Notes: generated by a model from the letters alone, not told the origin. A stretch of 63,419 bases of DNA, filler included, from Guillardia theta CCMP2712 (GCF_000315625.1; 8 parts of 8 records of this genome joined end to end with filler, not necessarily neighbours in it), one strand, 5' to 3'. Shown: positions 18,891-48,100, counted from the first letter of the whole stretch. Numbers and translations: made by a program.

Positions 18891-19438
18891 GAGGCTCACC
18901 TGACCGGTCACGTGACACATCACGTGACCGAGACAAGACTTTTTTATATCGCAGATCCAAAAACCCATAGGACATTTCTCCCAGGGGGAAGAAAACCTCC
19001 CTTGACCCCCCTGTTTCTCGACGGATCCTGCCGGCCGGGCCCGTCAGTAGACCGACTGCAGCCTTCAGCCCCGCCTCAGACCCCCTGGAGGCCCGCCAGG
19101 AGGCTAAGTGTCCGGAGATTGGCCGGGGGCCTGATCTCTCCGGGCGGCCGTGACCGGTCAGCGGGCCGTGTCAGCAGGCCCGTGACATGTCAGCCGGCTG
19201 ACAGGGGCCGTGACCCGGCTGACAGGCTCACCTGACCGGTCACGTGACACATCACGTGACCGAGACAAGACTTTTTTATATCGCAGATCCAAAAACCCAT
19301 AGGACATTTCTCCCAGGGGGAAGAAAACCTCCCTTGACCCCCCTGTTTCTCGACGGATCCTGCCGGCCGGGCCCGTCAGTAGACCGACTGCAGCCTTCAG
19401 CCCCGCCTCAGACCCCCTGGAGGCCCGCCAGGAGGCTA
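18891..19438 (+). repeat. 332-bp tandem satellite, left remnant (~1.6 units)
   Basis: Same sequence as the units at 45166-50740. Period 332 (18912 vs 19244). Confidence 0.95.
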
Positions 19439-19463
19439 CATTGTGGGGTCAAACCGCGTTGGT
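19439..19463 (+). repeat. Left terminal inverted repeat CATTGTGGGGTCAAACCGCGTTGGT
   Basis: Reverse complement of 45141-45165 with 3 mismatches. Directly follows the CTA TSD. Confidence 0.92.
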
Positions 19464-19668
19464 CGTACTTAACGCAAAAGAGGAATGGGTAATTCGAGTT
19501 ATAGGAGACCGGTGGATGGGGACCCCCTGTAATCATGGTGGTAGTTTACAGTGATATTGGTGGTAGGGGTAATGGTGTATTTCATTGTGAGCTACCCAAA
19601 TTCTTTTTAAAACTATAGTTTTTATCATTCCTATTTTACCATCGTGTTGTGTACCAATCTTGTAGGAG

Positions 19669-20585
19669 GTTTGAATTTTTGTACCAGGAGCACTAGACAG
19701 ACCGGGTCCTTCTATACTTGTTTTTCTGGACCCAGGCCCCTGGGTCCACTTGATGAGAGCTACCCTACCCCCATGAGCCCTCCCATCGTACCCTACCTGG
19801 TAAGGCATTTTTTGTTTGAATTTTTGTACGAGTGGGTCTATATACACCGGGTCATTTGACGCAATATTTTCGACTGAGGGTAGGGTACTGAAATGTACTC
19901 TGTACCCCTCCTGATGGGTAGAGGGGGTAGTGGATGGTTTGAATTTTTGTACCAGGAGCACTAGACAGACCGGGTCCTTCTATACTTGTTTTTCTGGACC
20001 CAGGCCCCTGGGTCCACTTGATGAGAGCTACCCTACCCCCATGAGCCCTCCCATCGTACCCTACCTGGTCAGGCATTTCTTGTTTGAATTTTTGTACGAG
20101 TGAGTCTATGTACACCGGGTCATTTGAGGCAATATTTTCGACTGAGGGTAGGGTACTGAAATGTACTCTGTACCCCTCCTGATGGGTAGAGGGGGTAGTG
20201 GATGGTTTGAATTTTTGTACCAGGAGCACTAGACAGACCGGGTCCTCTCTGAGGATTGTCACCCCACGGGTGGTAAGCTCCATTCGAGGTACCCTACCCC
20301 CATGAGCCCTCCCATCGTACCCTACCTGGTCAGGCATTTCTTGTTTGAATTTTTGTACGAGTGGGTCTATATACACCGGGTCATTTGAGGCAATATTTTC
20401 GACTGAGGGTAGGGTACTGAAATGTACTCTGTACCCCTCCTGATGGGTAGAGGGGGTAGTGGATGGTTTGAATTTTTGTACCAGGAGCACTAGACAGACC
20501 GGGTCCTCTCTGAGGATTGTCACCCCACGGGTGGTAAGCTCCATTCGAGGTACCCTACCCCCATGAGCCCTCCCATCGTACCCTA
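19669..20585 (+). repeat. Subterminal tandem repeat, ~3.5 copies of a 261-268-bp unit
   Basis: GTTTGAATTTTTGTACCAGGAGCACTAGACAGACCGGGTCC recurs at 19669, 19937, 20205 and 20466. Confidence 0.9.
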
Positions 20586-20718
20586 ACCCACAACCCTGTT
20601 CCACTACCCCAGGGGTATGGTACCAAATTGACACCCCCCCGGGGTCAGATTTTTTCAAAGGCGCGCAAGTGAAGGTCACGTTACCGCATCACGTTACACA
20701 CGGCCGGGACTTTGGAAC

Positions 20719-20845
20719 CGTGACCTTGGTATCGTGACTTTGGTATCGTGACTTTCGGTATCATGACCTTGGTATCGTGACTTTCGGTATCATGACCTTG
20801 GTATCGTGACTTTCGGTATCATGACCTTGGTATCGTGACTTTGGT
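20719..20845 (+). repeat. 14-16-bp minisatellite (RTGACYTT(C)GGTATC)n
   Basis: About 8 copies directly visible, alternating two variants. Confidence 0.9.
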
Positions 20846-21147
20846 CTACGGTATCGGATTCAACCGGTCCGATGCCGACATGTTTGCGCACACAACCCTG
20901 TCGACCATCTCACGGTGCTGCATGTAGAGCTCGTACCATTCAATGGCATGCTGCATTTTCTGCAGATTGATGTCATTGTCCCGAAGGATCGCATGCAATG
21001 ACGCGAGGTCTGACGCGGTGTCCATGACTTCTTGGGGGCATTCAGATTCCCCAAGTCCTTTTATTATTTAGGGCAAAAAAAAAACGGTTAGCTTAGTTTT
21101 TTTTAAAAAATTTACAAAAAGGGATTCAACCGGTCCGAACCAAGAGA

Positions 21148-21681
21148 ATGTGGGACGCACTGTCGCTGTACGGGGGCATCACTGTCTTGGTGGCCAGTCT
21201 TTTCACCCTTCAAATGGCGTGGAAACGTCAGAATAAGGCAAAGGCAGTGGTGGGGAATAGAGATTGGGTCGGGAAATTCATGTTGAAGCACAAGAAGTGG
21301 TTCCCGTTGGCCCTCCGCGAGGTAAAAGCGGGCACGAAGGAGTCGGACTGGATATTGTGGGTCTTCCCGATCCCCCTCACATTGGCGGAGGATGAAATAG
21401 ACATTCTCTCGGCCAGCAGAAAGGAGTACTGTGTGCCGACTGCAGAGGAAGGGATTGCCCTCATCCTGGATGAAGTCTTTCACAAGGACCTCGTGGAGAT
21501 CATGCAGGCGTTGCAGCATCATGGGAATCCGCAAAGGGTGTTCACGAGCAGCATCGATCGGACAATGTTCCGCATGTCGATCGACTACCTCATTGGTATC
21601 CTCGGTGAGAACCCGGAGGTTCTGCTGCAGGATCAGCGTCTGCAGGATCTGCTGGTCTTCTGGCGCGATCAAACGGCGTAG
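21148..21681 (+). CDS. Cargo hypothetical protein with N-terminal transmembrane helix
   Basis: ATG-initiated 177-aa ORF with hydrophobic LYGGITVLVASLFTL. AATAAA just after the stop, A/T-tract flanks. Confidence 0.7.
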   Translation: MWDALSLYGGITVLVASLFTLQMAWKRQNKAKAVVGNRDWVGKFMLKHKKWFPLALREVKAGTKESDWILWVFPIPLTLAEDEIDILSASRKEYCVPTAEEGIALILDEVFHKDLVEIMQALQHHGNPQRVFTSSIDRTMFRMSIDYLIGILGENPEVLLQDQRLQDLLVFWRDQTA

Positions 21682-21982
21682 TGTTGAAAATAAATGAATT
21701 TTATGTTGGGTCTTGGGTCATGTCATTTCATGGGTCATTTCTGACCCAAAAACAAAAAAGAGATTCGCACGGATTTACTACTTGCACGTGCGACATTTTC
21801 CAAAAAAAAAAAGATATTGCGTGCACGTGCGTTGCATATCTTTCAAAAAAAAAAAAATATATCGCCTTATCCAAACGGTCGGGGGATTTACTCCATGTGC
21901 CCCTTATCCTAACGCACACGACTCCTTATAAAAAGGGGCGTCGGCACCGGCGGTGGCCACACAAGCAAACACGGAAAGAGAC

Positions 21983-23964
21983 ATGTGCGTCGGACACGGC
22001 CTGTCCTATCACTTCATAGGCCTCGGCTGCCTGGCTGCATTGGAGAGGGATGGGGAACTGATTGGGCCGATCCTGTACGGCCCGAGGGTCATGGAGTGGG
22101 GCACCGGCGCAGTGCACGTGGTCGCACACAGGTTGCAGGATGGGGAGGGCTCGATCGTGTCCTTTGAGCACAGGGTCGGTGTGGAGGAGTGTGACTTCAC
22201 GCTGGTCCCCCACGAGCCATGCTGCCTGTTCGACGGCGTGCCGCCCGACGCGATGATCACCAAGACCGCATCGGATGGCATCGACGAGCTAATGGAGAGC
22301 GGCGTCGGCGCAAGGGTGTTGGATTACATCTCCGGGCTGGACCCCGATGAGAGGATATGCCTCACCGGGTACGACATGGGCGGGGTCATGGCCCAGCTGT
22401 TCGCCCTCACGTGCAGGTAAACATAGAGCATGCCCCTCTGACGCACTGAGAAACACGCGCAGGCGGGCGTTTGTCATGACCATGGGGAGGCCCATGTTCG
22501 CCAACCGGGCGTTCACCAAGTGGTACAACAACACCGTGCACTCTGTCAGCTGCTTCATTGCAAAGGGGGACAGCATAGCGGATTACTGCCGGGCAAGGGC
22601 ATCCGGGGGGCTGCACGAGGATGCCGGGGTGATCATCCTGGACAACAACGAGGACCTGCCGCAGGAAACCCCCGATGGCACGCTCCGGAACCACGGCAGG
22701 GACTATTACAGGAGGTGCTTCTCGAACCTGCGCAGGAGGAGGCAGCGGATCGGCCCCATGATGGACCCCGCCATCGCTGGGAGGTACATCTCGCGGCTTG
22801 CAAGGCCGCCCCCCGGGCGGATGGGGATGATCGCCAGGGCCCGCCGCATGATCGAGGACGGGCTCCTGGGGGACAATAGTGCCGCAAAAACCGCATACCG
22901 CAGCCTCGCGGAGAGGATCAATCAAAAGGCTGTCATCTCCAACACGGCGAGGTTCGTGTCGGGCCTCTTGTACCTGATCAAGAGGGCACAGATCAGGTCG
23001 GGGCGCGCGACGCTGGAGGGCAGCGACCCCCCCCGCTCCTTCAACGCCAGGCCCGTGGTGGCCTCTGTCCTGATCAAGTGGCACCCGAGGGCATGCTTCG
23101 AGTCCATGGGGGCAATGGAGGAGGACCTGCGGGCGCGCGCCGTGGCCCTGATCAAGCGGCTATCGGACATTGCCGCAAGCATGGCCTCCCCCGGATTCTC
23201 GTTCTCGATCGACGCCTGCCTGGGTTGGGAAGGGCTCGACGAGGAGCTCACCGGGTACCTGGCGGCATTCGAGAGGTGGAGGGTCCCGGACAAGAAGAGG
23301 GTGGCGTCGAGGATATCGCACTCCCTCAGGGCGCTGTACGTCGCACACAGCAGGCTCAAGGATCGCGGGGACGCGGAGTTCATGAACATGCACAGGGATT
23401 TCATCGCACAGAAGGAAAAGCTGAGGAAGCAGTACGCCGCGTGCATCGGGAAGGAGGAGCTCGCCCGGCTGGATGCAGAGTTCGGGATGATCGATGTGAA
23501 GGAGGCCGCGGGATCCCAGGATGCCGCCGGCACCACCAGGCCCCCGCAGAAGCAGGACAGGATGAACAACGAGCAGCTCGCCTATGAGCTCTTCCTCGAC
23601 CCCAACTTTCGCATCAAGGACGGGTACCAGGAACTCAACCGCGGCGTCTTGGATGGCGTGCGCAACGCGTTCAGGGAAGCGTTCTGGGAAAGCCTGGTCG
23701 ATGACATGAGGCTCCAGCCCCCGGTATACTGCCGCGTGATCAAGGTCCTCGGCGATATTCTCAATGGGTACACCGAGATCGTCCCGTCGGAGAGGGCCCT
23801 CATGATGGACATCGTAAACCTGCAGCTCATCCAGGAGCGGGTTGCAAGTGACAGCCTCGGATGGGCCGACACCGTCGCGTTGATCAGGTTGCTGGCCGGG
23901 AAGGTCCATGACTTGGATGGATTCAAGGTGACATTGTTGGTCGTTTGTTTGATTGATTGTTTGT

Positions 23965-23995
<31 letters not shown>

Positions 23996-24094
23996 GTTGG
24001 TTGGTTGGTTGGTTGGTTGGTTGGTTGGTTGATTGATTGGTTGGTTGGTTGGTTGGTTGGTTGGTTGGTTGATTGATTGATTGATTTGATTGAT

Positions 24095-24125
<31 letters not shown>

Positions 24126-24142
24126 GTTGATTGATTGATTGA

Positions 24143-24210
<68 letters not shown>

Positions 24211-24312
24211 NNNNNNNNNNNNNNNNNNNNNNNNNNNNNNNNNNNNNNNNNNNNNNNNNNNNNNNNNNNNNNNNNNNNNNNNNNNNNNNNNNNNNNNNNN
24301 NNNNNNNNNNNN

Positions 24313-24396
<84 letters not shown>

Positions 24397-24404
24397 CGAT
24401 TGAT

Positions 24405-24488
<84 letters not shown>

Positions 24489-24496
24489 CGATTGAT

Positions 24497-24540
<44 letters not shown>

Positions 24541-25730
24541 CGATTGATTGATTGATTGATTGATCGATTGATTGATTGATTGATCGATTGATTGATTGGT
24601 TGGTTGGTTGATTGATTGGTTGGTTGGTTGGTTGATTGATTGGTTGGTTGGTTGATTGATTGATCGATTGATTGATTCTTTAGTTGATCGATTGATTGAT
24701 TCTTTAGTTTGATCCTGTGCTTAGGAGCGCGAGGTGGAGCACATGAAGAGATGGGGGGAAATCGACGCATCCATGGACACCGCCCCCGCCGTGCAGCACC
24801 CGGGCATCATCGGCGGGTCGCTGTGCCTCATCCTGGACGGCCTCAACCTGGCCAGGGTGCACAGCGCAAACGAGAACCTGAGGAAGATATCGTGGGTCAT
24901 CGCCGCACACGGCGTCGATTATCTCCGCAGCGCATACAAGGCAAGGGTGAAGGCCGACCCCACGGCGCTCCAAAGGAACAGGTCGTGGCTGGAGAGGGTC
25001 GCAAGGGGGCTCGTGGAGACCGGGCACATCCAGATGCAGGCGCTCGCGGCGGGAAGCGCGGAGGCCTATCTGACCGTCACAAGGCACGCCATCCTCAGGA
25101 TGGCAACCGGCAGCGCGTTCCTCGGCGCGATGGATACCCCCCCGCTGCTCGCGATGGATGTCAAGCGCCTAAGGGACCTCCGGATGGATTCAGCATGGAT
25201 CGCATCACCGTCGCCATGATCGGCATGGCAAGGCAAAGGCTGCTCGCGCACGCAGACAGGGAGGAGGCCTCCGCACTGGCCGAGGCATTCGCCACCGCCA
25301 TCAACGGGTTCAGTATCACCGGCACGCTCAACAGCGACCTCCCCGGCGACTTCAGCAGGGAGAGGCAGGTCGCCGCCGTCATAGCGGCGCTCGAAGACTC
25401 CCTCAGCATCGAGCAGAAGAGGGTGGCGGCATCCATCATGGGCCAGCCGCAGTGCGACCTCGCCGCATTCTTGAGGTTCGATGACAACGTATGGAGGATC
25501 ACCCACCGCGTGGTGTACAACAGGTGGCTCGTGGCGGTCTCGTCGTCGTCGCAACCACCGGCAGTCCCCACGGATTCCGTCACCAAGACCACCTATACAA
25601 GGATCTACCACAACGCACGCAGGATCCGCGCGCTGGCAAAACGGACATTGACATCTACGCACCATTCTACAACCAGGCCATCACGAGCGCATTCTCCCAG
25701 ACGGATATCTCCAACGGCAACGGTAACTAG
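21983..25730 (+). CDS. Cargo lipase-3-like + TCP11-domain fusion, paralog A (2 introns, 2 apparent frameshifts)
   Basis: Lipase-3-like motifs [15 protein letters not shown] and [20 protein letters not shown]11-like motifs [24 protein letters not shown] and [14 protein letters not shown] introns 22417-22462 and 23928-24724 restore frame. Frame changes near 25185 and 25640. Confidence 0.75.
23940..24700. repeat. (GATT)n/(GGTT)n intronic microsatellite with gap
   Basis: Directly visible inside intron 2 of paralog A. Confidence 0.95.
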
Positions 25731-28117: not shown

Positions 28118-29236
28118 ATGTCTGACTTCCCCCCCGACCTTGAGGAGTTTTCATCCCAGCAAGAGATGAGATCAAAGAGAAGGAAAGTCTGCATTCATGG
28201 GAGTGCGCCATCGAGATGTCAAACGAAGGGATGCTACAGGGCGAGCAGGTGTGAGCACGGGAGGCAGCGATCGCAGTGCAAGGACTGCGGGGGCGGCAGC
28301 GTATGCGAGCACTGGAGGCAGCGCTCGAGGTGCAGGGACTGCGGGGGAGGTAGCATATGCGTCCACGGGAGGCTGCGCTCAGGCTGCAGGGACTGCGGGG
28401 GAGGCGGCTTATGTCAGCACGGGAGGCAGCGATCGCAGTGCAAGGACTGCGGGGGAGGCGGCGTATGCGAGCACGGGAGGCAGCGATCGAGGTGCAGGGA
28501 CTGCGGGGGAGGTAGCATATGCGTCCACGGGAAGCTGCGCTCAGGCTGCAGGGACTGCGGGGGAGGCGGCATATGTCAGCACGGGAGGCAGCGATCGCAG
28601 TGCAGGGACTGCGGGGGAGGCGGCGTATGCGAGCACGGGAGGCAGCGCTCGAGGTGCAGGGACTGCGGGGGAGGTAGCATCTGCGTCCACGGGAGGCTGC
28701 GCTCAGGATGCAGGGACTGCGGGGGAGGCGGCATATGTCAGCACGGGAGGCTCCGCTCGAGGTGCAAGGAATGCGGGGGAGGCGGCATATGCGACCACGG
28801 GAGGCAGCGGTCGAAGTGCAGGGGATGCGCCGGCGTCGGCATATGCGACCACGGGAGGCGCCGATACCAGTGCAAGGAATGCGGGGGCAGCAGCATCTGC
28901 GAGCACGGGAGGCGACGGTCAGGATGCAGGGACTGCGGGGGCGGTGGCATATGCGACCACGGGAGGCAGTGGTCCCGATGCAGGGACTGCGGGGGCAGCG
29001 GCATCTGCGGGCACGGGAGGCGGCAGACGCAGTGCAAGGAATGCGGGGGCAGCAGCATCTGCGAGCACGGGAGGCGCCGGTCAGGATGCAGGGACTGCGG
29101 GGGCGGTAGCATATGCGACCACGGGAGGCTGCGCTCGAGGTGCAGGGACTGCGGGGGCGGTAGCATATGCCAGCACGGGCGGCAGCGATCGCAATGCAAG
29201 GAGTGCAGGCGCGGTCGAAGCTCACCACCCCAGTAG
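28118..29236 (+). CDS. Cys/His zinc-binding repeat protein (~18 x CxHGRxRSxCxDCGGG)
   Basis: 18-aa (54-bp) repeat with conserved C, H and CxxC. Basic RSKRRK NLS-like motif. TATATAAA upstream at ~28065. Confidence 0.85.
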   Translation: MSDFPPDLEEFSSQQEMRSKRRKVCIHGSAPSRCQTKGCYRASRCEHGRQRSQCKDCGGGSVCEHWRQRSRCRDCGGGSICVHGRLRSGCRDCGGGGLCQHGRQRSQCKDCGGGGVCEHGRQRSRCRDCGGGSICVHGKLRSGCRDCGGGGICQHGRQRSQCRDCGGGGVCEHGRQRSRCRDCGGGSICVHGRLRSGCRDCGGGGICQHGRLRSRCKECGGGGICDHGRQRSKCRGCAGVGICDHGRRRYQCKECGGSSICEHGRRRSGCRDCGGGGICDHGRQWSRCRDCGGSGICGHGRRQTQCKECGGSSICEHGRRRSGCRDCGGGSICDHGRLRSRCRDCGGGSICQHGRQRSQCKECRRGRSSPPQ

Positions 29237-30533: not shown

Positions 30534-31301
30534 CTAGGCCTGGGATACAATCCCATCGCTTTTCATCCTCCTGACCACGCGGGGTGTCATGCGTGAAGCG
30601 ATATCTCTCCCACCGATCAAAGTATGCGCGTTCCCGGGCGTGTAGTAGTTTCTCAGCCGGTTGGTCATGCCGTCCTTCTTCTCCGTCCTGTACACTTGGT
30701 CGTGGAGAACATCGATCCTTGTGGCCCGTTGACTCTGGATGGATTCGAGCTCGGAGATTTGTTCTTCAAGGGTGGCGATGGTCTTCCTGAGCGTTTGATT
30801 GAGCCTCTTGCAGGAGACGATTTCATCCCTGAGTCGGCGATTTTGTTCCTTCATGGATCTGTTCTTGGCGATGAGGTGAGTGTTCTCGCCCTTGATATGC
30901 GAGTCCTTGCTCTTGAGCTTGTCGTCGTCGAGGATGAGCCTGTCGTAACCTGATTGTATTGAGGAGAGCCTTTCTTGGAGGGTTTCGTGTTCACGCTGCA
31001 GTGCGACGTAATCCTCTTGATGCGATTTCAGGGACTCGTTCTCGGCGAGGGGTTGCTGGTTCCTCTCGAGGAGCTGCTGGTGCCTCTCAAGCAGGGCCTC
31101 GTTCCTCTGGGTGAGCTCCCTGTGTTCCTTCAACTTCTCAGAGCCCTTGCGCATGAGCAGCTGCCCGCTGTCCCCCGTGGGCTGGCTCTTGTACGCCCCC
31201 CCCGCCGCCAAGGCGAGCGGCTGGATGTATCGGGTGTATCTCGGGGGAACATAGAAGGACTGGGTGAGGTAGAGGCCGGCGCCGAGGCCTGCTCCCAGCA
31301 T
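30534..31301 (-). CDS. Cargo coiled-coil protein with hydrophobic N-terminus
   Basis: 255-aa ATG-initiated ORF with long heptad stretches. Confidence 0.7.
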   Translation of the reverse strand: MLGAGLGAGLYLTQSFYVPPRYTRYIQPLALAAGGAYKSQPTGDSGQLLMRKGSEKLKEHRELTQRNEALLERHQQLLERNQQPLAENESLKSHQEDYVALQREHETLQERLSSIQSGYDRLILDDDKLKSKDSHIKGENTHLIAKNRSMKEQNRRLRDEIVSCKRLNQTLRKTIATLEEQISELESIQSQRATRIDVLHDQVYRTEKKDGMTNRLRNYYTPGNAHTLIGGRDIASRMTPRVVRRMKSDGIVSQA

Positions 31302-36706: not shown

Positions 36707-39244
36707 ATCCCAAAAAACAACACTCACGCGAGAGCGCGCAGGTGCAGGAGCACAGTCCCCCCCCGCGAGCCCTCCCTCCTCAAGCGCTCGGCCTCCAGGA
36801 TCCTCAAGCGATTCTTCCGCGGCGTGGTCGCAGGTAAAAACAAAACAAAACTCGAGGCAGAGAGCTCACCCAATCATTCCCGCAGACAGGGGGCTCATCG
36901 CGAACGCGCGGAGGTTCAAGGCCTCCGGCATCATGGACCCCTCCTCATCGCTCACCGACGACCAGATCGTCACAAGGCTCCGCCAGCAGCCGCTCATCGA
37001 CTGCGCAAGGAGGCTCTTCATCGCGCTCCAATACATCATCAGAGCGGCCCAGGTCAAGTGCGGGCCCGACGCGGCCCAGGTCAAGTGCGAGCCCGACGCG
37101 GCCCAGGTCAAGTGCGGGCCCGACGCGGCCCAGGTCAAGTGCGAGCCCGACGCGGCCCAGGTCAAGTGCGGGCCCGACGCGGCCCAGGTCAAGTGCGGGC
37201 CCGACGCGGCCCAGGTCAAGTGCGAGCCCGACGCGGCCCAGGTCAAGTGCGGGCCCGACGGGGACAGGGCGGCGAAGCGCCCAAGGCAGCACGATCGGCA
37301 GCAGCGGCAGCAGGACCAGGACACCCAGGAGCCGTGGAACATCAGGGTCGTCCTCTCCATCACCCTCATACACCTCAACCCCAACGTCTGCTTCGAATAC
37401 ATCCAGAGGCACCAGACACAGCCCCAGCAGGAGCTCAGGAACTCCGCGGCGGAGGCCTTCCTCGCTCTCCAGGACTTCATCTCCGAGGCAACCGCCCCAG
37501 GTTACATCCTCGACGCGCACGGGCTCCTCCGCCACGCCAGGCTGCCCGCCAAGATCAACGCGTACATCCGCGCGTTCAAGAGGTGGAAGGTCCCCGACGA
37601 GCAGAAGATCACCGCGAGGATACAGCACTCCCTCCTCGGGATATACAGCGCGGAACTCCGCATCCCCAGGGGCCACCCCGACTTCCAGGCGCAGCAGCTC
37701 GAGTTCGCCCTCCAGAAGACCAAGCTCTGGGAGAAATACGCTCAGCTCAACTCCCCAGAGGGCGCACTCCAGCTCCAGGAGTCCCTCCGCAAAGATGGCT
37801 TCGTCGTCGACCTCCAGCAGGACGCGGACATCGTCGCGGGCGCACGGATGACCACCCCCGCAGAGGAGGCGACCATCCGCCCGCCAAGGCTCACCGACAC
37901 CCAGATGTCCAACGAGCAGATCGCATACGAGCTCTTCCTCGACCCCGCATTCAAGATCCCGGACTCCCACGACCCAAACGCAAGGGACGTGCACTCCACG
38001 GTCAGGGTCGCCTTCAGAAACGCCTTCTGGGAAAGCCTCGCCGTCGACCTCCAAATGAACCCCCCGGTCTACGCAAGAGTCGTGAACGTCTTCGCGGAGA
38101 TCGTCCAAGGCTACCTCGAGATCCGCCCTTCCGACACGGCCCTCGTCCGCCAGAACGTCAACCTCCCATACATAACAGCACAGATCGAGGCCGCCACATT
38201 CCAGTGGCAGGACATCATCGCATACCTCCAGTTCATATTCTCAAACCTCCTCAAGATCGAGCCGACCGTCCTCCGACAGGAGGGGTCGCAGTGGCAGGAC
38301 ATCGTGCACGGCTTCGGGGGCTCCCAGGCTCGGGATCAGCCAGGGATCGCCACAAGGGCACTCAGGCTCATGCTCGACTCCCTCCAGAAGCTCAGGCTCC
38401 ACATCGCAAACTCCAGGCTCTCGAGGATCGCCCACGTCATCGCCGCCCACGGGGTCGAGTACCTCAAGGCACACCACAAGAAGTTCGCCGCCGCAAACCC
38501 CGAGAGGATCGCACAGGACAGGGCCTGGCTCCTATCCGCCGCAAGCAGGCTGCCCGCCATCGACACCCAGGCGCTCAGGGATGGCTCCCCGCAGCATTCT
38601 CCGCCGTGCTCAACCACGCAATACTCTCCGTCGTCGCCTCCGACCAGCACCTCGTGCAGGGCTCCATCCCGGCAATCCTCAGGCTCGACCTCAACAGGAT
38701 CAGGACCTTCCAGCTACACTTCCTCATGGACAGGATCGCAGTCGCAGCGGTCGCGCTCGCGGACTTCAAGCTCTCCAGGGCAAGGGATGTCTCCCCCCAG
38801 CAGAGATCCCAGGCGGTCATCGCCGTCGCCGACACCCTCAACACACTCGACATCGCCCAGAGGATCGACATACACTCCGTGTGGATCATCACCCTCCAGG
38901 CCCTCCTCCCAACCGTCCTCCAACACCTCCAGAACACCCTCCCAAAAAACGCCATCCAGCTGCTCCAAGACCCCCAGGAACCGGGCTCCCTCGAGGCGTT
39001 CTTCCAGATCCCAGAGGCATTCTGGAACGTGACACAGGACGCCGTATACAACAGGTGGCTCGAGATCATCGCCCACGAGAAGAAGCCCCCAGCCGTCATC
39101 CCCGCTGCCCTCAAGATGCCAACAAGGCCGGTTTACCCCCGCATACTCCGCAACGCCCGCGCACTGTGGAGCGTCGTCGACGCAAAGCGCAAGATACACG
39201 CATCGGACGTCAACGAAGCGCTCGCAAACGCATCCCCGCAGTGA
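35900..39244 (+). CDS. Cargo lipase-3-like + TCP11-domain fusion, paralog B (3 short introns, 1 apparent frameshift)
   Basis: Introns ~36113-36165, 36690-36741 and 36834-36885 join the frames. TCP11-like motifs [24 protein letters not shown] and IAAHGVEYLK. Frameshift in a C-run at ~38590. AATAAA at ~39272. Confidence 0.78.
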   Translation: MLPKSLIGVAGLAALEEGTIHSAPLLRGIKKKQWTFPNSRARAYRLPSGASVIALEFNPTPLDFSLATVRQVKKLRIPRQQIADTGQNRTPRRXXXXXXXXXXXXXXXXXXXXXXXXXXXXXXXXXXQRHSRTSSDTWARSTGTRHSSSRDGSSQQSSHSSSLSSSPGTRDSSSSPSGNHAQGTGVSPAGTTACSPSSSPSTHRVTPSANTAETSSQGRTPTPSGRISPTYSSTTRSRSSPPQATTSPTTTGTTTGDAATASTGATQQEIPKNNTHARARRCRSTVPPREPSLLKRSASRILKRFFRGVVAGKNKTKLEAESSPNHSRRQGAHRERAEVQGLRHHGPLLIAHRRPDRHKAPPAAAHRLRKEALHRAPIHHQSGPGQVRARRGPGQVRARRGPGQVRARRGPGQVRARRGPGQVRARRGPGQVRARRGPGQVRARRGPGQVRARRGQGGEAPKAARSAAAAAGPGHPGAVEHQGRPLHHPHTPQPQRLLRIHPEAPDTAPAGAQELRGGGLPRSPGLHLRGNRPRLHPRRARAPPPRQAARQDQRVHPRVQEVEGPRRAEDHREDTALPPRDIQRGTPHPQGPPRLPGAAARVRPPEDQALGEIRSAQLPRGRTPAPGVPPQRWLRRRPPAGRGHRRGRTDDHPRRGGDHPPAKAHRHPDVQRADRIRALPRPRIQDPGLPRPKRKGRALHGQGRLQKRLLGKPRRRPPNEPPGLRKSRERLRGDRPRLPRDPPFRHGPRPPERQPPIHNSTDRGRHIPVAGHHRIPPVHILKPPQDRADRPPTGGVAVAGHRARLRGLPGSGSARDRHKGTQAHARLPPEAQAPHRKLQALEDRPRHRRPRGRVPQGTPQEVRRRKPREDRTGQGLAPIRRKQAARHRHPGAQGWLPAAFSAVLNHAILSVVASDQHLVQGSIPAILRLDLNRIRTFQLHFLMDRIAVAAVALADFKLSRARDVSPQQRSQAVIAVADTLNTLDIAQRIDIHSVWIITLQALLPTVLQHLQNTLPKNAIQLLQDPQEPGSLEAFFQIPEAFWNVTQDAVYNRWLEIIAHEKKPPAVIPAALKMPTRPVYPRILRNARALWSVVDAKRKIHASDVNEALANASPQ
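37044..37260 (+). repeat. 27-bp coding minisatellite x8 (AAQVKC[G/E]PD)
   Basis: GCGGCCCAGGTCAAGTGCG(G/A)GCCCGAC repeated in frame. Confidence 0.95.
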
Positions 39245-39543: not shown

Positions 39544-39875
39544 GTCGGGCGGTAACAAACTTGACCCAAGTTTGGGGCTCGCTTTTCTTTGAAAAAACGC
39601 AAGCACGTTTTTTTTTTCAATTCTTGAAAAAAATGACTTCAAACGGGGCCTTTTGTCGTATAAAGGTTAAAAAAAAAGAATTGCACCAAACGCACGTGCT
39701 TGCGAAAAAAAAAGAATTGCACCAAACGCACAACGCAAGCACAAATCTGTCTGAAACAGAATGGGGGGTGGGGTGGGTCTATTGTTGGTACAAAACCTGG
39801 GGCGGGGGCTAGATGACCACCCCCTATTCTTAAGTACCCCACCTGTGGTTCACGGCGGTTCGTGCTTCCATCGCC

Positions 39876-41027
39876 ATGAACAGGCATGGCGGCAAGCGCC
39901 AACGCGATGATGTTGGCAGTGATGGGGCTGGATCAACAGACAGGCCAGGAGATAGCGACAGCGGCGGCGAGAGCGGCAGCGGCGGCGAGAGCGGCAGCGG
40001 CAGCGGCGGCGAGAGCGGCAGCGGCAGCGGCGGCGAGAGCGGCAGCGGCGGCGAGAGCGGCAGCGGCAGCGGCAGCGGGAGCCCCGAGGACTTCGGAACG
40101 CTAGAGATCATCGAGGCCATGCAGCAGCACCCGGACAGCACAGAGGTGCAGCTGAGGGGCTGCAGGCAGCTGTGCGGCCTCGCCGACGCCGACAGATCCA
40201 CGCTCTCTCACTACTTCGATGCGGCCGTCGGCTCGGTATACAGGGCCATGTTCATGTACCCAGGCAGCAGGGAGCTGCAAGAGCAGGGCTGCAAGGCGCT
40301 CAGAAGGCTCACCGACAGCCATGACAAGTGCACCCCCCAAGCCCAAGGCTACCTCATCAAACCAATCACCAGGGCCATGCAGCAGCACCCAGACAGCACA
40401 GAGGTCCATGCGCACGGCCTCAGGGTGATGTGCCGCTTGTGGCACCAATTCAAGTCCATCGACGAGATCAAATCAATCATCGATGCTGTACGGAGGCACG
40501 CGGGCAGTGAGGTGATACAGGCGGAGGGCCTCAAGGTGCTCATGTACTGCACCAGCTTGAAGTCGCGCCTCGCGTTATCGAGCCTCGGCGTGGTTCGGGT
40601 CATCGTCGAGGCTATGGGGCTGCACCCGGGCGACCAGCACGTGCAGGAGGAGGGCTGCTCTTTCATGAAATCACTCGCCGAAGACGGTGAAGATGGATCG
40701 GAGCTGGGCATCATGATAGCGAGCCTCGGTGGGATCGAGGCGATCGTTCGGGCCATCAAGCTACACCCAGGCTCATGGGGCTGTTTTTTCAACGGCTGCT
40801 GGGCACTGGCCGGCATCGCCAGGAATGACGACATCGGCGCAAAGATCGCCGCAAACGGTGGGATCCAGGCAATCCTCGAGGCGATGGAGATGCACCCAGC
40901 CAGAGGCTATCGCATCAAGAAACCGCTCAAGGCCCTCGCTGCCAACGCCGACAACAGGGCCATGTTTGCCAGGGCCTTGGAGCTTCACACGGGCACGGAG
41001 CAGGTGCGTCAGGTACTTTGGGAGTAA
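39876..41027 (+). CDS. Armadillo-repeat protein with Gly/Ser-repeat N-terminus
   Basis: ~42-aa repeats of the type GGIEAIVRAMxxHPxxxxVQxxGCxAL. Confidence 0.85.
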   Translation: MNRHGGKRQRDDVGSDGAGSTDRPGDSDSGGESGSGGESGSGSGGESGSGSGGESGSGGESGSGSGSGSPEDFGTLEIIEAMQQHPDSTEVQLRGCRQLCGLADADRSTLSHYFDAAVGSVYRAMFMYPGSRELQEQGCKALRRLTDSHDKCTPQAQGYLIKPITRAMQQHPDSTEVHAHGLRVMCRLWHQFKSIDEIKSIIDAVRRHAGSEVIQAEGLKVLMYCTSLKSRLALSSLGVVRVIVEAMGLHPGDQHVQEEGCSFMKSLAEDGEDGSELGIMIASLGGIEAIVRAIKLHPGSWGCFFNGCWALAGIARNDDIGAKIAANGGIQAILEAMEMHPARGYRIKKPLKALAANADNRAMFARALELHTGTEQVRQVLWE

Positions 41028-41045
41028 ATTGGTGGGTAGGGTACA

Positions 41046-43652
41046 TTGACCAATACCCACCCGTTGAAGGTCCTTGCCTGTACCCTTCACATCCCCCCCG
41101 TTCCATTCTATAAAAGCTGGGATGAAAGTTGTGTTTCGCGCCGGGGTGCCACATTCACGCCTTGTTCAACACGATTGAGAAATCTCTGCCCAATGTTTCA
41201 ATTGGACTGTGGTCTATTCAAGAGAAATTCTACATCTTTGCATCAAGGACCACCAACGAAGAAGAGAAGAACAAAACAGAAAATTGAAATCAGTGATCCT
41301 GCTTTGGAATTCTGGGAAGAAGTTGCCAAAGAGGCAGACTTTGTCTACTCCAAGCGCAGTAAATGGCAAGGTGATGGAGATTTGCATTCGTTCTTCAATG
41401 GTTTTGGTTCAAGTGCCTCTGCCAAGTTTCCTGGACACATTACTGCGCGTACATTCAGTGAACTGTGGGAAGAATTCAAGACAGAGCATGAATTTCCATC
41501 GGAATTCCAACCATCCACTTGGACAGATTTTGAGGATGAGAATATCCAGCTACTTTTCTTGGAGAAGGTTAAAAAGCAAGTGATACCTTTCCTGGACATG
41601 AGTCTACGGAATTTTTTGGATGGGATCGGGGTTTCAGGACGCTCACACGAGGAACAATGGAGGTGTTTTGCATACTTGTTCGATGCGGTTTCAAATCAGA
41701 AAAACAGGAACAACAAATTTACTTTGGAGAAATTTTTGTCGGGGATTGTTCGTAACAGGAATGTTAAGCGTTACCTTGCAAAAGAGATTCGCAAAAACCT
41801 AAAACTTCAAAAGAAGCTCAAGTATATTGCCCGAAGCTATATGCCGGATGTCAACGAGTCATGTGCATTACTGCTGAAGGCGAATATGACCAAGGGTGCG
41901 TACAATACATTCTGGACTGAGGATGGCCGAATGCATCGTCTCGCAATTCCATTCAAGAAAATAGGAAAATGCCGTGTGATGAAGAAGCTTTTCTTGAAGC
42001 AAGCTTTGAAAGTTTTTCGAACCGAACAAGGATGTCACGGAACAGACCTTTTTGATTCTGTGAAATTGAAGATAGTGCAGAAGCATTTGCAACACAAAAA
42101 GAAGTTGCTGTTGATTTTCAACACAGATGCAACGGTTTTGGGGAAGTCACTTGGATCGGACACAAAACACACTGAAGTATCTTACACAATCCTCGCACCT
42201 CGATCCGAATGCGATGACAGCGAAGAATGGAATCAAATAGAAGCTTGTATCAGGCGGGCCCTCGATGCTGGGACTTTGATGATATTACCTGTGGGTGACA
42301 ACGCCAAGAATATGGACTTCAATTTTTGGAAACCGTACGAGAACCCTATCATTTCGATTCTGAAGAATGGCATCACGATCGGAGACAACAACATCGAGAT
42401 TCAAGTATTTTTCAGAGCAGACTTAGCTGGACACTATGGATTGCTCGATCATGGTGGAGTTCACGATCGCAGCGGGAAGTTTTGTCTTCACTGTGAAGAG
42501 ACAGCGCAAGCCAAGAAGGCAGGGAAATTCATTTTCCTCTCGGAGAACCAGCAGCAGGATTCGATCTCTTTGCGTGAATTTTGCAATCGTCATCGCCTTT
42601 TCCCTTCCGACATTGAAATGTTGAATGACATTGTACGCAGTGCTTGCGGTAATGGAGATCTTGCTATGGCAGAAATGATTGAAGGCAGTGATTCGGGAGG
42701 GGGCGCACATGTTGAACAGCTTTTGAGCAAATGTCTGGAAGCGGGCAATCAGCAGGAGTTGAGAGCATGCTTAGAAAATCCAGATAAGCCTCTTCCTATT
42801 GGCCTTGTTGTACCTTGTCTTCGTTTATGTAAGATTTCAAGAAAGTCTAGTCATCTTCAACAAGCTGACTTCCCGAGTCTGCATTTCCTCTACTGTGCAC
42901 TTCATCTGAGGTTAAGATTTGTCAACTTGTTGGTGAATTATATTTATGAAGTCGCTGCCAATCAAGGCAAAGTGGCAGCTGTTAACAGAATCTTGCAGTC
43001 GTTTCAAGTCAACATGGAACTGAAAAATGACAAAGATCAACAAAGACAGTTGAGCGGAAAGATGTGTAAACGATTCATGAACGCTTTGCCGCAAATCATA
43101 GATTTGCTGGTGCCGAACGAGGCGACTCGTCAAGAGTGGAAAACTGCCCTTGATGAATGGGATCATGTGATCACGGTTCTCTCGTGTCAGTACTACGACA
43201 AAATTACTCCGGCAGATGCTGAACAACTGCCGTTTAGGATCCGGAGCTTTTGTGTGAAAATTGTCAAATTGATCGGAGATGTGAAGAGGCTGCAGTCGTT
43301 TTATTTTCATAGCCTGCTCATTGGGCACATTGGTGAACAATTCGAGTATCTATACAAGGAGTTTGGAGTTCCCCTGGGACTTTTGAGCCTTTCTGCAATC
43401 GAAAAGCGACACGAAACAATGGGAAGACGATGCTACAAGAAAGCTGTAGCAGAGATCAATTTGTACATGAGTGGAAAGAGTACTTCCGATTTGCATCCCG
43501 ATGGACAACCCGATTCTAAGGCCTCACGATCGTTTTACACTCTGATGAATCTGCTTTTGCAATCATACAACGATGAGACTGCTGAAGCTCTATTTCAGCA
43601 CACAGTTCAAAACGTTAATTTAGCAGCGTTAAGAAGAAGTTTGGATGAATAA
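41046..43652 (+). CDS. RAG1/Transib/Chapaev-like DDE transposase (first ATG at 41193)
   Basis: Motifs in RAG1-core order: IFNTDAT (D1), FFRADLAG (D2), FCLHC, YCALHLRLR, LSGKMCKRF, FYFHSLLIGH and LGLLSLSAIEKRH (E). Uninterrupted and intronless. Confidence 0.85.
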   Translation: MTNTHPLKVLACTLHIPPVPFYKSWDESCVSRRGATFTPCSTRLRNLCPMFQLDCGLFKRNSTSLHQGPPTKKRRTKQKIEISDPALEFWEEVAKEADFVYSKRSKWQGDGDLHSFFNGFGSSASAKFPGHITARTFSELWEEFKTEHEFPSEFQPSTWTDFEDENIQLLFLEKVKKQVIPFLDMSLRNFLDGIGVSGRSHEEQWRCFAYLFDAVSNQKNRNNKFTLEKFLSGIVRNRNVKRYLAKEIRKNLKLQKKLKYIARSYMPDVNESCALLLKANMTKGAYNTFWTEDGRMHRLAIPFKKIGKCRVMKKLFLKQALKVFRTEQGCHGTDLFDSVKLKIVQKHLQHKKKLLLIFNTDATVLGKSLGSDTKHTEVSYTILAPRSECDDSEEWNQIEACIRRALDAGTLMILPVGDNAKNMDFNFWKPYENPIISILKNGITIGDNNIEIQVFFRADLAGHYGLLDHGGVHDRSGKFCLHCEETAQAKKAGKFIFLSENQQQDSISLREFCNRHRLFPSDIEMLNDIVRSACGNGDLAMAEMIEGSDSGGGAHVEQLLSKCLEAGNQQELRACLENPDKPLPIGLVVPCLRLCKISRKSSHLQQADFPSLHFLYCALHLRLRFVNLLVNYIYEVAANQGKVAAVNRILQSFQVNMELKNDKDQQRQLSGKMCKRFMNALPQIIDLLVPNEATRQEWKTALDEWDHVITVLSCQYYDKITPADAEQLPFRIRSFCVKIVKLIGDVKRLQSFYFHSLLIGHIGEQFEYLYKEFGVPLGLLSLSAIEKRHETMGRRCYKKAVAEINLYMSGKSTSDLHPDGQPDSKASRSFYTLMNLLLQSYNDETAEALFQHTVQNVNLAALRRSLDE

Positions 43653-43745
43653 AATTTTTACTTCTCTGTCTGAATACTTTTACAAACACAACAGTTCACA
43701 ATGCAGACTTAGGAAATTTGGAAGAACACCTTTCTACCTAGTTGC

Positions 43746-44891
43746 TTAGTCGTGCTCCGAGGGAGGGAAACTCCAAATTAGCGCCTTGGTGAAGGATAAC
43801 CTCACAATTTTTGTGAACTTGAAGGTGATCGCTGTTGCACATGCCGAACGTGGATTTTGGATCGGCATGAAAATTTGGATAGGGCCTTCGAGGTAGATGG
43901 ATCCTCGAGCAGGCCCTAGGCTAAAAGGACAATCTTTCAAGGGAACATTCAAGGCTTCTTTGAACAATGGAGTGTCTAACAGATTTGCATCCAGAGTCCA
44001 GGCACATCGACGAGAATGGCGGTTTGAAATTCCTGAGCACAGCACCTTGCTTGTTTCTACAGGCATCTGTCTCAACAAATACAGCATTGCAGTAAAATCT
44101 TGAATTGGTACGGTGAAAGCAAGGCGATTTGCTTTTCTCGGATTCCATTTAGTGCATCCTCGCTTCACCAACCATACCTTCAATTCTTCTCGTATGACAT
44201 TAAAAACATTGGTGATCTTGAAGAAGTTAAGCTCGTCCTGAAAGTTCGCAAAATAACAATTGAGCATTGATTGTGTCAACCGAAATCCTTTGAAGTATTC
44301 TATGTGACAACGTTCTTTTTGCTGTACATTCTCGAAAAAGATCCATCCAACGACGCTTACAAGTGAGACAGGAGATGGAGGACCGGGGGCAACATAAACA
44401 CATGGAAATGTAACATGGAAAATTCTCACGATATCTGATATTGGAAACTCATCTGTATATATGCTCTGGAAACACTCATGTGATTGAATTCCAGCTAGCA
44501 AACTTGTGTACCTCCTGTCATTCATGATAGACAACTTTTGGAAAACTTCCTCAATGATCGACCTATTGTACAAAATGTAAACTTCTACGGACTGCTCTGT
44601 GACATGTTTAATGACTCCGTGCCGCTCCTTACGATCGACGTCCAAGAACACAACGCCAAGAAAAGGTTTCAACGTCAGATCAACATTCCACATGGGCACA
44701 TGGTACTTTGGAGGGTTTGGCAACGGAGGAGAAGCTTGCATCTCAGATTGGTAGGTAAAACAAAGAGGAACTTGGACATTGTTAGGAATGTTTCCGGGCT
44801 GTTCTTGCAGCTGAACCCGTTTGTCCCTCTGTTCGTAATGTCTCCTACTGTCATCTGCAATTTGAGCTGCCTTCCTTCGAACTCTTGCCAT
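43746..44891 (-). CDS. Transposon accessory protein with putative BAH-like domain
   Basis: Intact 381-aa ORF convergent with the transposase, same AT-richer composition. HECFQSIYTDEFPISDIVRIFHV resembles the BAH C-terminal signature. The ORF is likely real; the domain call is tentative. Confidence 0.7.
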   Translation of the reverse strand: MARVRRKAAQIADDSRRHYEQRDKRVQLQEQPGNIPNNVQVPLCFTYQSEMQASPPLPNPPKYHVPMWNVDLTLKPFLGVVFLDVDRKERHGVIKHVTEQSVEVYILYNRSIIEEVFQKLSIMNDRRYTSLLAGIQSHECFQSIYTDEFPISDIVRIFHVTFPCVYVAPGPPSPVSLVSVVGWIFFENVQQKERCHIEYFKGFRLTQSMLNCYFANFQDELNFFKITNVFNVIREELKVWLVKRGCTKWNPRKANRLAFTVPIQDFTAMLYLLRQMPVETSKVLCSGISNRHSRRCAWTLDANLLDTPLFKEALNVPLKDCPFSLGPARGSIYLEGPIQIFMPIQNPRSACATAITFKFTKIVRLSFTKALIWSFPPSEHD

Positions 44892-45140
44892 TCCTTTTCT
44901 GGTTGGACAGGGAGGGCACCGCCAACATTTTAGGATTGAGAATTTTAGGGTTATTATTTCTAAAGCTATAATTGCAATAGATTTGTACCAATTCCATGTT
45001 AAGCTTTGAGAGTAAAATACATGTAAAAACAGGTTTCAACCCAGTGTGAAAATCTTCGATAGCAAATTTCAAGAATCCTTGAAACAGAAATAACTACCCC
45101 CTGTTTCCCATGCCCCACCCCCCTTGAAAATTCCATTCGA

Positions 45141-45165
45141 ACCAACGCGGAATGACCCCAGAATG
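45141..45165 (-). repeat. Right terminal inverted repeat (reverse complement CATTCTGGGGTCATTCCGCGTTGGT)
   Basis: 22/25 match to the left TIR, immediately followed by CTA and the resumed satellite. Confidence 0.92.
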
Positions 45166-48100
45166 CTAAGTGTCCGGAGATTGGCCGGGGGCCTGATCTC
45201 TCCGGGCGGCCGTGACCGGTCAGCGGGCCGTGTCAGCAGGCCCGTGACATGTCAGCCGGCTGACAGGGGCCGTGACCCGGCTGACAGGCTCACCTGACCG
45301 GTCACGTGACACATCACGTGACCGAGACAAGACTTTTTTATATCGCAGATCCAAAAACCCATAGGACATTTCTCCCAGGGGGAAGAAAACCTCCCTTGAC
45401 CCCCCTGTTTCTCGACGGATCCTGCCGGCCGGGCCCGTCAGTAGACCGACTGCAGCCTTCAGCCCCGCCTCAGACCCCCTGGAGGCCCGCCAGGAGGCTA
45501 AGTGTCCGGAGATTGGCCGGGGGCCTGATCTCTCCGGGCGGCCGTGACCGGTCAGCGGGCCGTGTCAGCAGGCCCGTGACATGTCAGCCGGCTGACAGGG
45601 GCCGTGACCCGGCTGACAGGCTCACCTGACCGGTCACGTGACACATCACGTGACCGAGACAAGACTTTTTTATATCGCAGATCCAAAAACCCATAGGACA
45701 TTTCTCCCAGGGGGAAGAAAACCTCCCTTGACCCCCCTGTTTCTCGACGGATCCTGCCTCGCCGGGCCCGTCAGTAGACCGACTGCAGCCTTCAGCCCCG
45801 CCTCAGACCCCCTGGAGGCCCGCCAGGAGGCTAAGTGTCCGGAGATTGGCCGGGGGCCTGATCTCTCCGGGCGGCCGTGACCGGTCAGCGGGCCGTGTCA
45901 GCAGGCCCGTGACATGTCAGCCGGCTGACAGGGGCCGTGACCCGGCTGACAGGCTCACCTGACCGGTCACGTGACACATCACGTGACCGAGACAAGACTT
46001 TTTTATATCGCAGATCCAAAAACCCATAGGACATTTCTCCCAGGGGGAAGAAAACCTCCCTTGACCCCCCTGTTTCTCGACGGATCCTGCCGGCCGGGCC
46101 CGTCAGTAGACCGACTGCAGCCTTCAGCCCCGCCTCAGACCCCCTGGAGGCCCGCCAGGAGGCTAAGTGTCCGGAGATTGGCCGGGGGCCTGATCTCTCC
46201 GGGCGGCCGTGACCGGTCAGCGGACCGTGTCAGCAGGCCCGTGACATGTCAGCCGGCTGACAGGGGCCGTGACCCGGCTGACAGGCTCACCTGACCGGTC
46301 ACGTGACACATCACGTGACCGAGACAAGACTTTTTTATATCGCAGATCCAAAAACCCATAGGACATTTCTCCCAGGGGGAAGAAAACCTCCCTTGACCCC
46401 CCTGTTTCTCGACGGATCCTGCCGGCCGGGCCCGTCAGTAGACCGACTGCAGCCTTCAGCCCCGCCTCAGACCCCCTGGAGGCCCGCCAGGAGGCTAAGT
46501 GTCCGGAGATTGGCCGGGGGCCTGATCTCTCCGGGCGGCCGTGACCGGTCAGCGGGCCGTGTCAGCAGGCCCGTGACATGTCAGCCGGCTGACAGGGGCC
46601 GTGACCCGGCTGACAGGCTCACCTGACCGGTCACGTGACACATCACGTGACCGAGACAAGACTTTTTTATATCGCAGATCCAAAAACCCATAGGACATTT
46701 CTCCCAGGGGGAAGAAAACCTCCCTTGACCCCCCTGTTTCTCGACGGATCCTGCCGGCCGGGCCCGTCAGTAGACCGACTGCAGCCTTCAGCCCCGCCTC
46801 AGACCCCCTGGAGGCCCGCCAGGAGGCTAAGTGTCCGGAGATTGGCCGGGGGCCTGATCTCTCCGGGCGGCCGTGACCGGTCAGCGGGCCGTGTCAGCAG
46901 GCCCGTGACATGTCAGCCGGCTGACAGGGGCCGTGACCCGGCTGACAGGCTCACCTGACCGGTCACGTGACACATCACGTGACCGAGACAAGACTTTTTT
47001 TATATCGCAGATCCAAAAACCCATAGGACATTTCTCCCAGGGGGAAGAAAACCTCCCTTGACCCCCCTGTTTCTCGACGGATCCTGCCGGCCGGGCCCGT
47101 CAGTAGACCGACTGCAGCCTTCAGCCCCGCCTCAGACCCCCTGGAGGCCCGCCAGGAGGCTAAGTGTCCGGAGATTGGCCGGGGGCCTGATCTCTCCGGG
47201 CGGCCGTGACCGGTCAGCGGACCGTGTCAGCAGGCCCGTGACATGTCAGCCGGCTGACAGGGGCCGTGACCCGGCTGACAGGCTCACCTGACCGGTCACG
47301 TGACACATCACGTGACCGAGACAAGACTTTTTTATATCGCAGATCCAAAAACCCATAGGACATTTCTCCCAGGGGGAAGAAAACCTCCCTTGACCCCCCT
47401 GTTTCTCGACGGATCCTGCCGGCCGGGCCCGTCAGTAGACCGACTGCAGCCTTCAGCCCCGCCTCAGACCCCCTGGAGGCCCGCCAGGAGGCTAAGTGTC
47501 CGGAGATTGGCCGGGGGCCTGATCTCTCCGGGCGGCCGTGACCGGTCAGCGGGCCGTGTCAGCAGGCCCGTGACATGTCAGCCGGCTGACAGGGGCCGTG
47601 ACCCGGCTGACAGGCTCACCTGACCGGTCACGTGACACATCACGTGACCGAGACAAGACTTTTTTATATCGCAGATCCAAAAACCCATAGGACATTTCTC
47701 CCAGGGGGAAGAAAACCTCCCTTGACCCCCCTGTTTCTCGACGGATCCTGCCGGCCGGGCCCGTCAGTAGACCGACTGCAGCCTTCAGCCCCGCCTCAGA
47801 CCCCCTGGAGGCCCGCCAGGAGGCTAAGTGTCCGGAGATTGGCCGGGGGCCTGATCTCTCCGGGCGGCCGTGACCGGTCAGCGGGCCGTGTCAGCAGGCC
47901 CGTGACATGTCAGCCGGCTGACAGGGGCCGTGACCCGGCTGACAGGCTCACCTGACCGGTCACGTGACACATCACGTGACCGAGACAAGACTTTTTTATA
48001 TCGCAGATCCAAAAACCCATAGGACATTTCTCCCAGGGGGAAGAAAACCTCCCTTGACCCCCCTGTTTCTCGACGGATCCTGCCGGCCGGGCCCGTCAGT

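Follow-up and report, generated by a model that had tools for sequence, protein, structure and literature searches.

The analysis of a 63,419-nucleotide stretch of DNA from the cryptophyte Guillardia theta CCMP2712 (the window, taken at its full length) identified an insert at positions 19439-45165 that is a member of a true multi-copy family of DNA transposons that move by cut-and-paste. The normal element of this family is 5.3 kb long, and the insert is likely one enlarged copy of it in which 52 bp have been replaced by 20.4 kb of host-like DNA. The working unit of 5.3 kb would consist of 25-nt inverted ends, a left arm with subterminal repeats, a gene for a DDE transposase in a single exon and a conserved second gene in convergent orientation, open reading frame 2 (ORF2). 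The source of the insert is contig C285 (window 18854-50750), a scaffold of only 31.9 kb in a genome assembly of 87 Mb and 669 contigs. As scaffolded, the insert measures 25,727 bp, or about 22.85 kb if a 2.87-kb duplicate in its interior is left out. Its flanks and backbone are organized as follows (strand given where there is one):

18854-19435, left flank, 332-bp satellite with the interrupted unit
19436-19438, left CTA target site duplication, 3 bp
19439-19463, plus strand, left terminal inverted repeat, 25 nt, with one mismatch to the family consensus (position 5)
19439-20585, plus strand, left arm of the backbone, 84% identical to the sister copy on contig C154
20586-41009, acquired interior, 20,424 bp, absent from the sister copy on C154
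41010-45165, plus strand, right backbone module, 94.4% identical to its counterpart in the C154 copy
41193-43652, plus strand, transposase gene, 819 amino acids, one exon (frame 41193-43649), RAG1/Transib fold in a predicted model
43746-44891, minus strand, ORF2, 381 amino acids, tail-to-tail with the transposase gene
45141-45165, minus strand, right terminal inverted repeat, 25 nt, with two mismatches to the consensus (positions 14-15)
45166-45168, right CTA target site duplication
45169-50750, right flank, 332-bp satellite, 16.7 units

The insert sits within one 332-bp satellite unit, which it splits at 19438/19439 and 45165/45166. The satellite on the left ends with GGAGGCTA at 19438, the satellite on the right begins with CTAAGTGTCC at 45166 and the uninterrupted unit reads GGAGGCTAAGTGTCC. 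The comparison of both flanks with the intact unit therefore shows that exactly 3 bp, CTA, are duplicated around the insert, whose 25-nt inverted ends agree at 22/25 positions. A genome-wide search for these termini found them at more than 12 further loci with different flanks. The consensus end, derived from the seven copies for which both ends are available, is CATTCTGGGGTCAAACCGCGTTGGT; the inverted end starts with CATTCTGGGG, and the termini read CATTC...GAATG in all copies compared. Six of the seven paired copies are bordered by perfect duplications of 3 bp whose sequences are unrelated (CTA, AAC, GAC, TCA, TAA and GGA). Since the same ends recur at so many loci and are accompanied by such duplications, the insertion signature is not due to chance. 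The abundant relatives in the family are 2.1-kb forms, five of which are complete, non-coding (non-autonomous) and 91-100% identical to one another. Two of them, on contigs C2 and C14, are identical over 2,141 bp despite differing flanks and duplications, and therefore indicate very recent movement. Furthermore, the genome carries at least 25 substantial transposase loci that fall into several subfamilies, with identities down to about 20%; no inverted ends of the other subfamilies were found in the 5-kb loci, which were too short to show them. A previous reading of the window (the sequence-only reading) had proposed that a DNA transposon with exact ends had split a satellite unit, with a 3-bp duplication (CTA on both sides), 22/25 inverted ends and a transposase module at the right end. 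The flank comparison and the paired copies confirmed the former points, and the module corresponds to the right part of the backbone (41010-45165).

Three insertions of the family (the window copy and those on C447 and C535) sit in the same 332-bp satellite family, which could reflect either a target preference or a mere tolerance of insertions in satellite DNA. One contig of sequencing run X3 meets the satellite exactly at 45165 but with 35 differing letters before the junction; it may correspond to another insertion at the same position in a different satellite unit. A family member is also carried by metagenome contig L064, on which its ends could be placed only tentatively. The adjoining gene (L064:2314-2910) encodes SH3_Tf2-1 and Chromo domains and resembles the tail of a retrotransposon integrase, which suggests transposon-rich surroundings.

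The organization of the normal element was established from a single 5.3-kb autonomous sister copy, located on contig C154. This copy spans 5,331 bp and its left arm is joined straight to the right module. The breakpoints lie at 4145|4198 in C154 (locus L025) and at 20585|41010 in the window, so that 52 bp in C154 occupy the place of 20,424 bp in the window. The left arm of the window copy harbors 3.2 subterminal tandem units of 261-268 bp at 19668-20585, and the 52 bp of C154 simply continue this repeat unit (they align to window 20314-20381). Therefore, the uninterrupted state of C154 is ancestral and the interior of the window copy is a later acquisition; the reverse scenario, C154 as a deletion derivative, was ruled out on the same grounds. 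The left arm also contains seven direct copies of the 17-mer GTTTGAATTTTTGTACC between 19669 and 20482. This 17-mer, which was found as well at a contig end of a distant subfamily, is by analogy with CACTA elements a likely candidate for a protein-binding site.

The interior differs from the backbone in composition (mostly 52-67% G+C vs 43-46% in the right module). It is single-copy in the genome apart from known multi-copy families and occurs only once inside a family element. The best genomic match to any of its unique parts reaches 71-81% identity. The inner junctions (20585/20586 and 41009/41010) are devoid of duplication, and the right one shows 7 bp of microhomology (CAGGTAC, common to both sides). 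On this basis, one or a few repair events at an internal break of the element, through template switching or end joining, are the most likely route by which the load was acquired. As for the movement of the element, analogy with RAG1 and Transib suggests that the enzyme would probably introduce a nick at the CA end and free the element via a flank hairpin, after which the 3' ends would be joined to target DNA opened with a stagger of 3 bp. Two other origins of the interior were considered and rejected: (i) a complete nested transposon, given that there is neither a junction duplication nor an inverted repeat that has an arm at 20586 and that the right end is not repeated elsewhere, and (ii) a Helitron, given this same lack of repetition of the right end and the loss of 52 bp of backbone at the insertion site.

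A hybrid of two neighboring elements could also account for host DNA that separates a left arm from a right module with no inner duplications. The two elements would have flanked 20 kb of chromosome; one would have lost its right part and the other its left part, and the outer ends would then have carried the whole into the satellite. Such a two-element model was put forward for Pack-CACTA elements by Catoni et al. and, according to the summary in PMC13317346, is documented for CACTA-type elements. However, the retained parts of the window copy are complementary to within 52 bp of the 5.3-kb backbone, a fit that two independent deletions would give in about 1-2% of cases, and no remnants of inner inverted repeats are left. 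Because of this complementarity, the two-element model is the weaker alternative, and we regard it as very unlikely compared to the capture of host DNA by a single 5.3-kb element.

The transposase of the sister copy corresponds to GUITHDRAFT_119696. Sequence and profile searches with the transposase gave no match in Pfam or the PDB; in particular, Transposase_21 did not match at E values up to 10, and no Plavaka Pfam match was obtained. A profile search of 1.84 billion representatives retrieved 30 relatives; the eight that were traced to their source derive from G. theta, from transcripts of Hanusia phi and from metagenome or run assemblies. AlphaFold modeling from an alignment of 31 sequences gave a predicted local distance difference test (pLDDT) score of 81 and a predicted template modeling (pTM) score of 0.71, while an earlier model from four sequences (pLDDT 38) was useless. 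When this model was compared to the PDB with Foldseek, the best 49 matches were all RAG1, HzTransib or BbRAGL (E values of 2.5e-9 to 1e-4), followed by Hermes (0.04). Similarly, VIA-align gave Z scores of 19.6 for RAG1 (421 residues at 3.4 Å, positions 217-796 of the model on 480-1024 of RAG1), 19.2 for HzTransib and 18.4 for BbRAGL, compared to 11.4 for the P element and 7.5 for Hermes.

Conservation was counted over 22-27 sequences per column, and the key residues are 96-100% conserved. They include (i) three acidic residues, D312 on the first strand (22/22), D410 at the end of the fourth strand (24/24) and the catalytic E737 (24/25), (ii) the pair C431-x2-C434, located 21 residues past D410 (24/25 and 26/26), and (iii) the pair H706-x5-H712 (27/27 and 26/27), the second histidine of which lies 25 residues before E737. 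D369, C568, H571 and R575 are also invariant, and the conserved columns agree with the RNase H topology of the model. These spacings mirror those of RAG1, D708-C727/C730 and H937/H942-E962. Based on features and shapes in the ESM Atlas, the transposase falls among clusters of RAG1, Transposase_21 and Plavaka and among unnamed clusters from moss, cnidarians, Mucoromycota and rotifers; the clusters with Transposase_21 are fold neighbors only (template modeling scores of 0.38-0.47). Taken together, the fold of the predicted model and the motifs support a RAG1-like transposase, as the sequence-only reading had surmised.

Homologues of ORF2 occur at the same position and in the same orientation in every subfamily of G. 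theta, with identities down to 21%. The tail-to-tail layout of the two genes is also found in metagenome contigs, and homologues of both are present in the transcriptome of H. phi. ORF2 matches nothing in Pfam or the PDB, RAG2 and kelch included, and its best feature score in the Atlas is 0.84. Between the window copy and the C154 copy, the ratio of nonsynonymous to synonymous substitutions (dN/dS) is 0.31 for the transposase gene (dS 0.12) and 0.18 for ORF2, so both genes have been retained by selection, as judged from these two G. theta copies. In the window copy, both genes are intact and appear to be transcribed. Run X4, probably of RNA, covers only 41469-44947, at a word depth of 226-345, with no differences from the window copy and no cover on the adjacent interior, and 5 reads were obtained from an RNA run of 2026 of which about 6% was sampled. 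At 41140-41470, just past the start codon of the transposase gene, the depth drops in all three contig-based runs.

The sequence-only reading had gone further and seen in this insert a giant gene-carrying lineage comparable in concept to fungal Starships but DDE-based. On this view, the 20-kb load would be functional and move along with the element. Some features are in keeping with this proposal: the ends are intact, the duplication around the whole 25.7 kb is perfect and the load lies between the arms, leaving the transposase gene, ORF2 and the subterminal repeats undestroyed. In addition, another large locus was found at C47:551571-562273, where long inverted repeats (at least 575 bp, 98.8% identical and more than 10.7 kb apart) enclose the transposase and ORF2 of another subfamily together with additional GC-rich open frames devoid of Pfam matches. 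However, the C47 locus also holds a nested 2.1-kb copy of the family, and these inverted repeats may not mark the true ends of its element. Furthermore, the load of the window copy is single-copy, and among its contents are one gene that is truncated and part of an unrelated repeat. The autonomous sister copy, which represents the ancestral state, is 5.3 kb long and the abundant mobile forms are 2.1 kb long. Therefore, a giant lineage is unlikely, and this part of the sequence-only reading was not upheld.

The assembly of the interior also deserves attention, as it contains four gaps. One of them (24211-24312) lies inside a single (TTGA)n microsatellite that runs on at both sides. The others are associated with the second copy of a 2.87-kb unit that is 99.9-100% identical to its neighbor: two are located inside it (35740-35874 and 36180-36279) and one directly before it (33827-33926). 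This second copy, which resembles redundant contigs, may be a scaffolding artefact, i.e., redundant contigs placed by the scaffolder, and reading frames crossing gaps, such as a 1114-amino-acid frame at 35900-39244, were not trusted. These gaps and the small size of the scaffold raise the question of whether the interior, or part of it, was wrongly scaffolded between two true transposon ends. We consider this highly improbable. Both inner junctions are within contigs, and the one at 41010 is bridged without differences by contigs from two independent runs of different studies (40684-41377 in X1 and 40500-41137 in X3). In addition, 427 identical bases are shared by the contig that stops at 33826 and the one that begins at 36280, an overlap that links the two halves of the interior, and the outer flanks fit one split satellite unit. 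The concern that the internal gaps join unrelated loci, raised with the sequence-only reading, was thus not borne out.

Several points nevertheless weigh against the reading of the insert as a 5.3-kb element enlarged by captured host DNA. The read check of the interior covers only the right inner junction, and the assignment of run X4 to RNA is an automatic guess. There is a single loaded copy, with no second one in the G. theta assembly, so movement with the load is unproven, and the load may have entered either before or after the element landed in the satellite. The present mobility of the window copy is itself uncertain, considering that its termini deviate from the consensus by one and two mismatches. 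The capture mechanism is deduced from the anatomy of the junctions alone, and no donor locus of more than about 81% identity is present in the assembly, so that copying from an extant host locus is only hypothetical. Finally, we know of no solved structure of a CACTA or Chapaev transposase, and the fold match therefore cannot separate a Transib-like enzyme from one of the CACTA/EnSpm-Mirage-Chapaev (CMC) type.

The interior displays the following features:

20592-20856, plus strand, truncated end of an unrelated repeat, with 97-98% identical copies at three other loci that share the same sharp left boundary
21148-23972, plus strand, chain of open frames with a DUF1810 match (E 1.8e-9), a weak match to Lipase_3 and, below the Pfam cut-off, one to the Tcp11 N-terminus
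23945-24701, (TTGA)n microsatellite of about 750 bp, holding the assembly gap 24211-24312
28118-29236, plus strand, Cys-rich protein with 18-amino-acid repeats (54-bp unit, 17.7 copies)
31057-33826, 2.87-kb unit, first copy
33927-36706, 2.87-kb unit, second copy, 99.9-100% identical to the first
36669-39032, plus strand, open frame with a Tcp11 domain (E 4.6e-16)
39876-41027, plus strand, open frame with ARM repeats, severed at the junction between interior and backbone

The sequence-only reading had counted about 12 cargo genes, a figure that the analysis did not confirm; the recognizable content is limited to DUF1810, two Tcp11-like regions, a coiled-coil frame, the Cys-rich repeats and the ARM repeats. 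The frames at 21148-23972 probably belong to one or two intron-containing genes of host type. The nearest paralogue of the Tcp11 frame at 36669-39032 lies on contig C359 (71-78% nucleotide identity). The Cys-rich protein is built of about 18 repeats of the type C-x-H-G-R-x-R-S-x-C-x-x-C-G-G, and its family has at least 57 other matches in the genome (69-82% nucleotide identity). The ARM-repeat frame meets a stop 18 bp into the backbone, and a GT that is a possible splice donor lies beside the junction. Pfam scans of the open frames revealed no transposon-type domain in the interior and no recombinase domain in any scanned frame, the mobility genes being those for the DDE transposase and ORF2 only. 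The repeat truncated at 20592-20856 occurs elsewhere at L056:3347-3614, L057:2889-3135 and L058:3140-3388, with internal tandem units of 29 bp; about 600 bp are common to two of these loci, and the repeat may be a small transposon or a satellite. At 32708-32743, 35578-35613 and 39681-39716 the interior carries a palindromic motif around GCGCACGTGC that is bordered by A or T runs. The motif also directly follows the unrelated repeat in L056-L058 and may represent an intergenic signal that is common in the G. theta genome.

Among known systems, the hallmarks of the CACTA/EnSpm-Mirage-Chapaev-Transib (CMCT) clade include 5'-CA..TG-3' termini and a duplication of 2-5 bp (Kojima 2025, PMC12730594). 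The G. theta family shares the termini (CATTC...GAATG in all copies), the duplication length (3 bp) and a Cys/His motif between D410 and E737, but with a His spacing of 5 instead of 3-4. Transib and RAG-like elements in the strict sense have a 5-bp duplication and a CAC heptamer (PMC10629977), and are therefore excluded by the 3-bp duplication and the CAT end. This CAT end, together with the lack of a Transposase_21 match, also argues against CACTA proper. We therefore place the family in the wider CACTA/Chapaev/Transib clade and not in Transib itself. The RAG1-like fold and the lack of a DDE_Tnp_4 match spoke against PIF/Harbinger, which was rejected despite the 3-bp duplication and the two genes. 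No G. theta family appears in the tree of PMC12730594, and no description of the present family was found in the papers searched. The view of the sequence-only reading that the lineage is undescribed holds to this extent, but its traits fit a known clade, and gene capture by CACTA-type elements is already known (PMC13317346).

The family resembles Transib, RAG1, ProtoRAG and AanRAGL (from the alga Aureococcus) by (i) a fold that matches the whole catalytic core (Z 19-20 over about 420-430 residues), (ii) the D, D, E residues, with C(2)C some 20 residues past the second D and a pair of histidines some 25 residues ahead of the E, and (iii) ends that start with CA. It also resembles RAG1L/RAG2L by its convergent two-gene layout (PMC10629977). 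It differs from them by the 3-bp duplication instead of 5 bp, an end (CATTCTG) that has only CA in common with CACAGTG-type heptamers, the H(5)H spacing and a transposase without any sequence or Pfam match to RAG1 families. In ProtoRAG-type elements the convergent partner gene is RAG2-like with a kelch propeller; searches of Pfam and the PDB with the second gene of the G. theta family detected no RAG2 or kelch signature. With the CMC superfamily, the family shares the subterminal repeats, a second gene and the tendency to take up host DNA. Its termini are close to those of PlavakaB, which has CATCA..TGATG ends and a 2-3 bp duplication (PMC12730594). The hosts of the transposase's Atlas neighbors (moss, coral, Mucoromycota) are of the same types as those of Lanisha, another group of the CMCT clade, and these common host taxa make an affinity with Lanisha a lead; the ends and duplication length of Lanisha were not found in the papers searched. 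In contrast to CMC elements, the family has no Transposase_21 or Plavaka Pfam match, has CAT instead of CAC termini, encodes an ORF2 unrelated to any named accessory protein and has been found only in cryptophytes and in a few metagenome contigs. A bolder proposal would give the family the rank of a superfamily-level branch of its own, between Transib/RAG and CACTA/Chapaev, with ORF2 as an obligatory partner (a functional analogue or even a distant relative of RAG2) and with an element able to bring host genes totaling more than 20 kb to new sites. This we hold to be doubtful.

Overall, this family adds to the cryptophytes, a protist lineage, a recently active two-gene transposon with an enzyme of the RAG1/Transib fold; the papers searched gave no account of such elements in this lineage. 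Its mix of traits (RAG1-like core, 3-bp duplication, CA..TG ends and convergent partner gene) helps to relate RAG1/Transib to CACTA/Chapaev and bears on the question of whether two-gene transposase systems have arisen more than once. The loaded copy resembles Pack-CACTA, Pack-MULE and soybean Tgm elements (PMC13317346, PMC8903248), with pieces of host genes between the arms, one gene truncated at a junction and no inner duplication. Unlike these Pack-type elements, its carrier is still autonomous with both genes intact, and its load is far larger (20 kb) and has neither a donor locus nor a second copy in the assembly. Starships are much larger, rely on a tyrosine recombinase captain and recur as families with their cargo. 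The window element shares with them only the idea of a large element with host-type genes, as its enzyme is of the DDE type and its load is found in one copy only. It therefore does not establish a Starship-like class, but is a clean natural case of an autonomous element that has gained 20 kb of host DNA while keeping its genes and ends.

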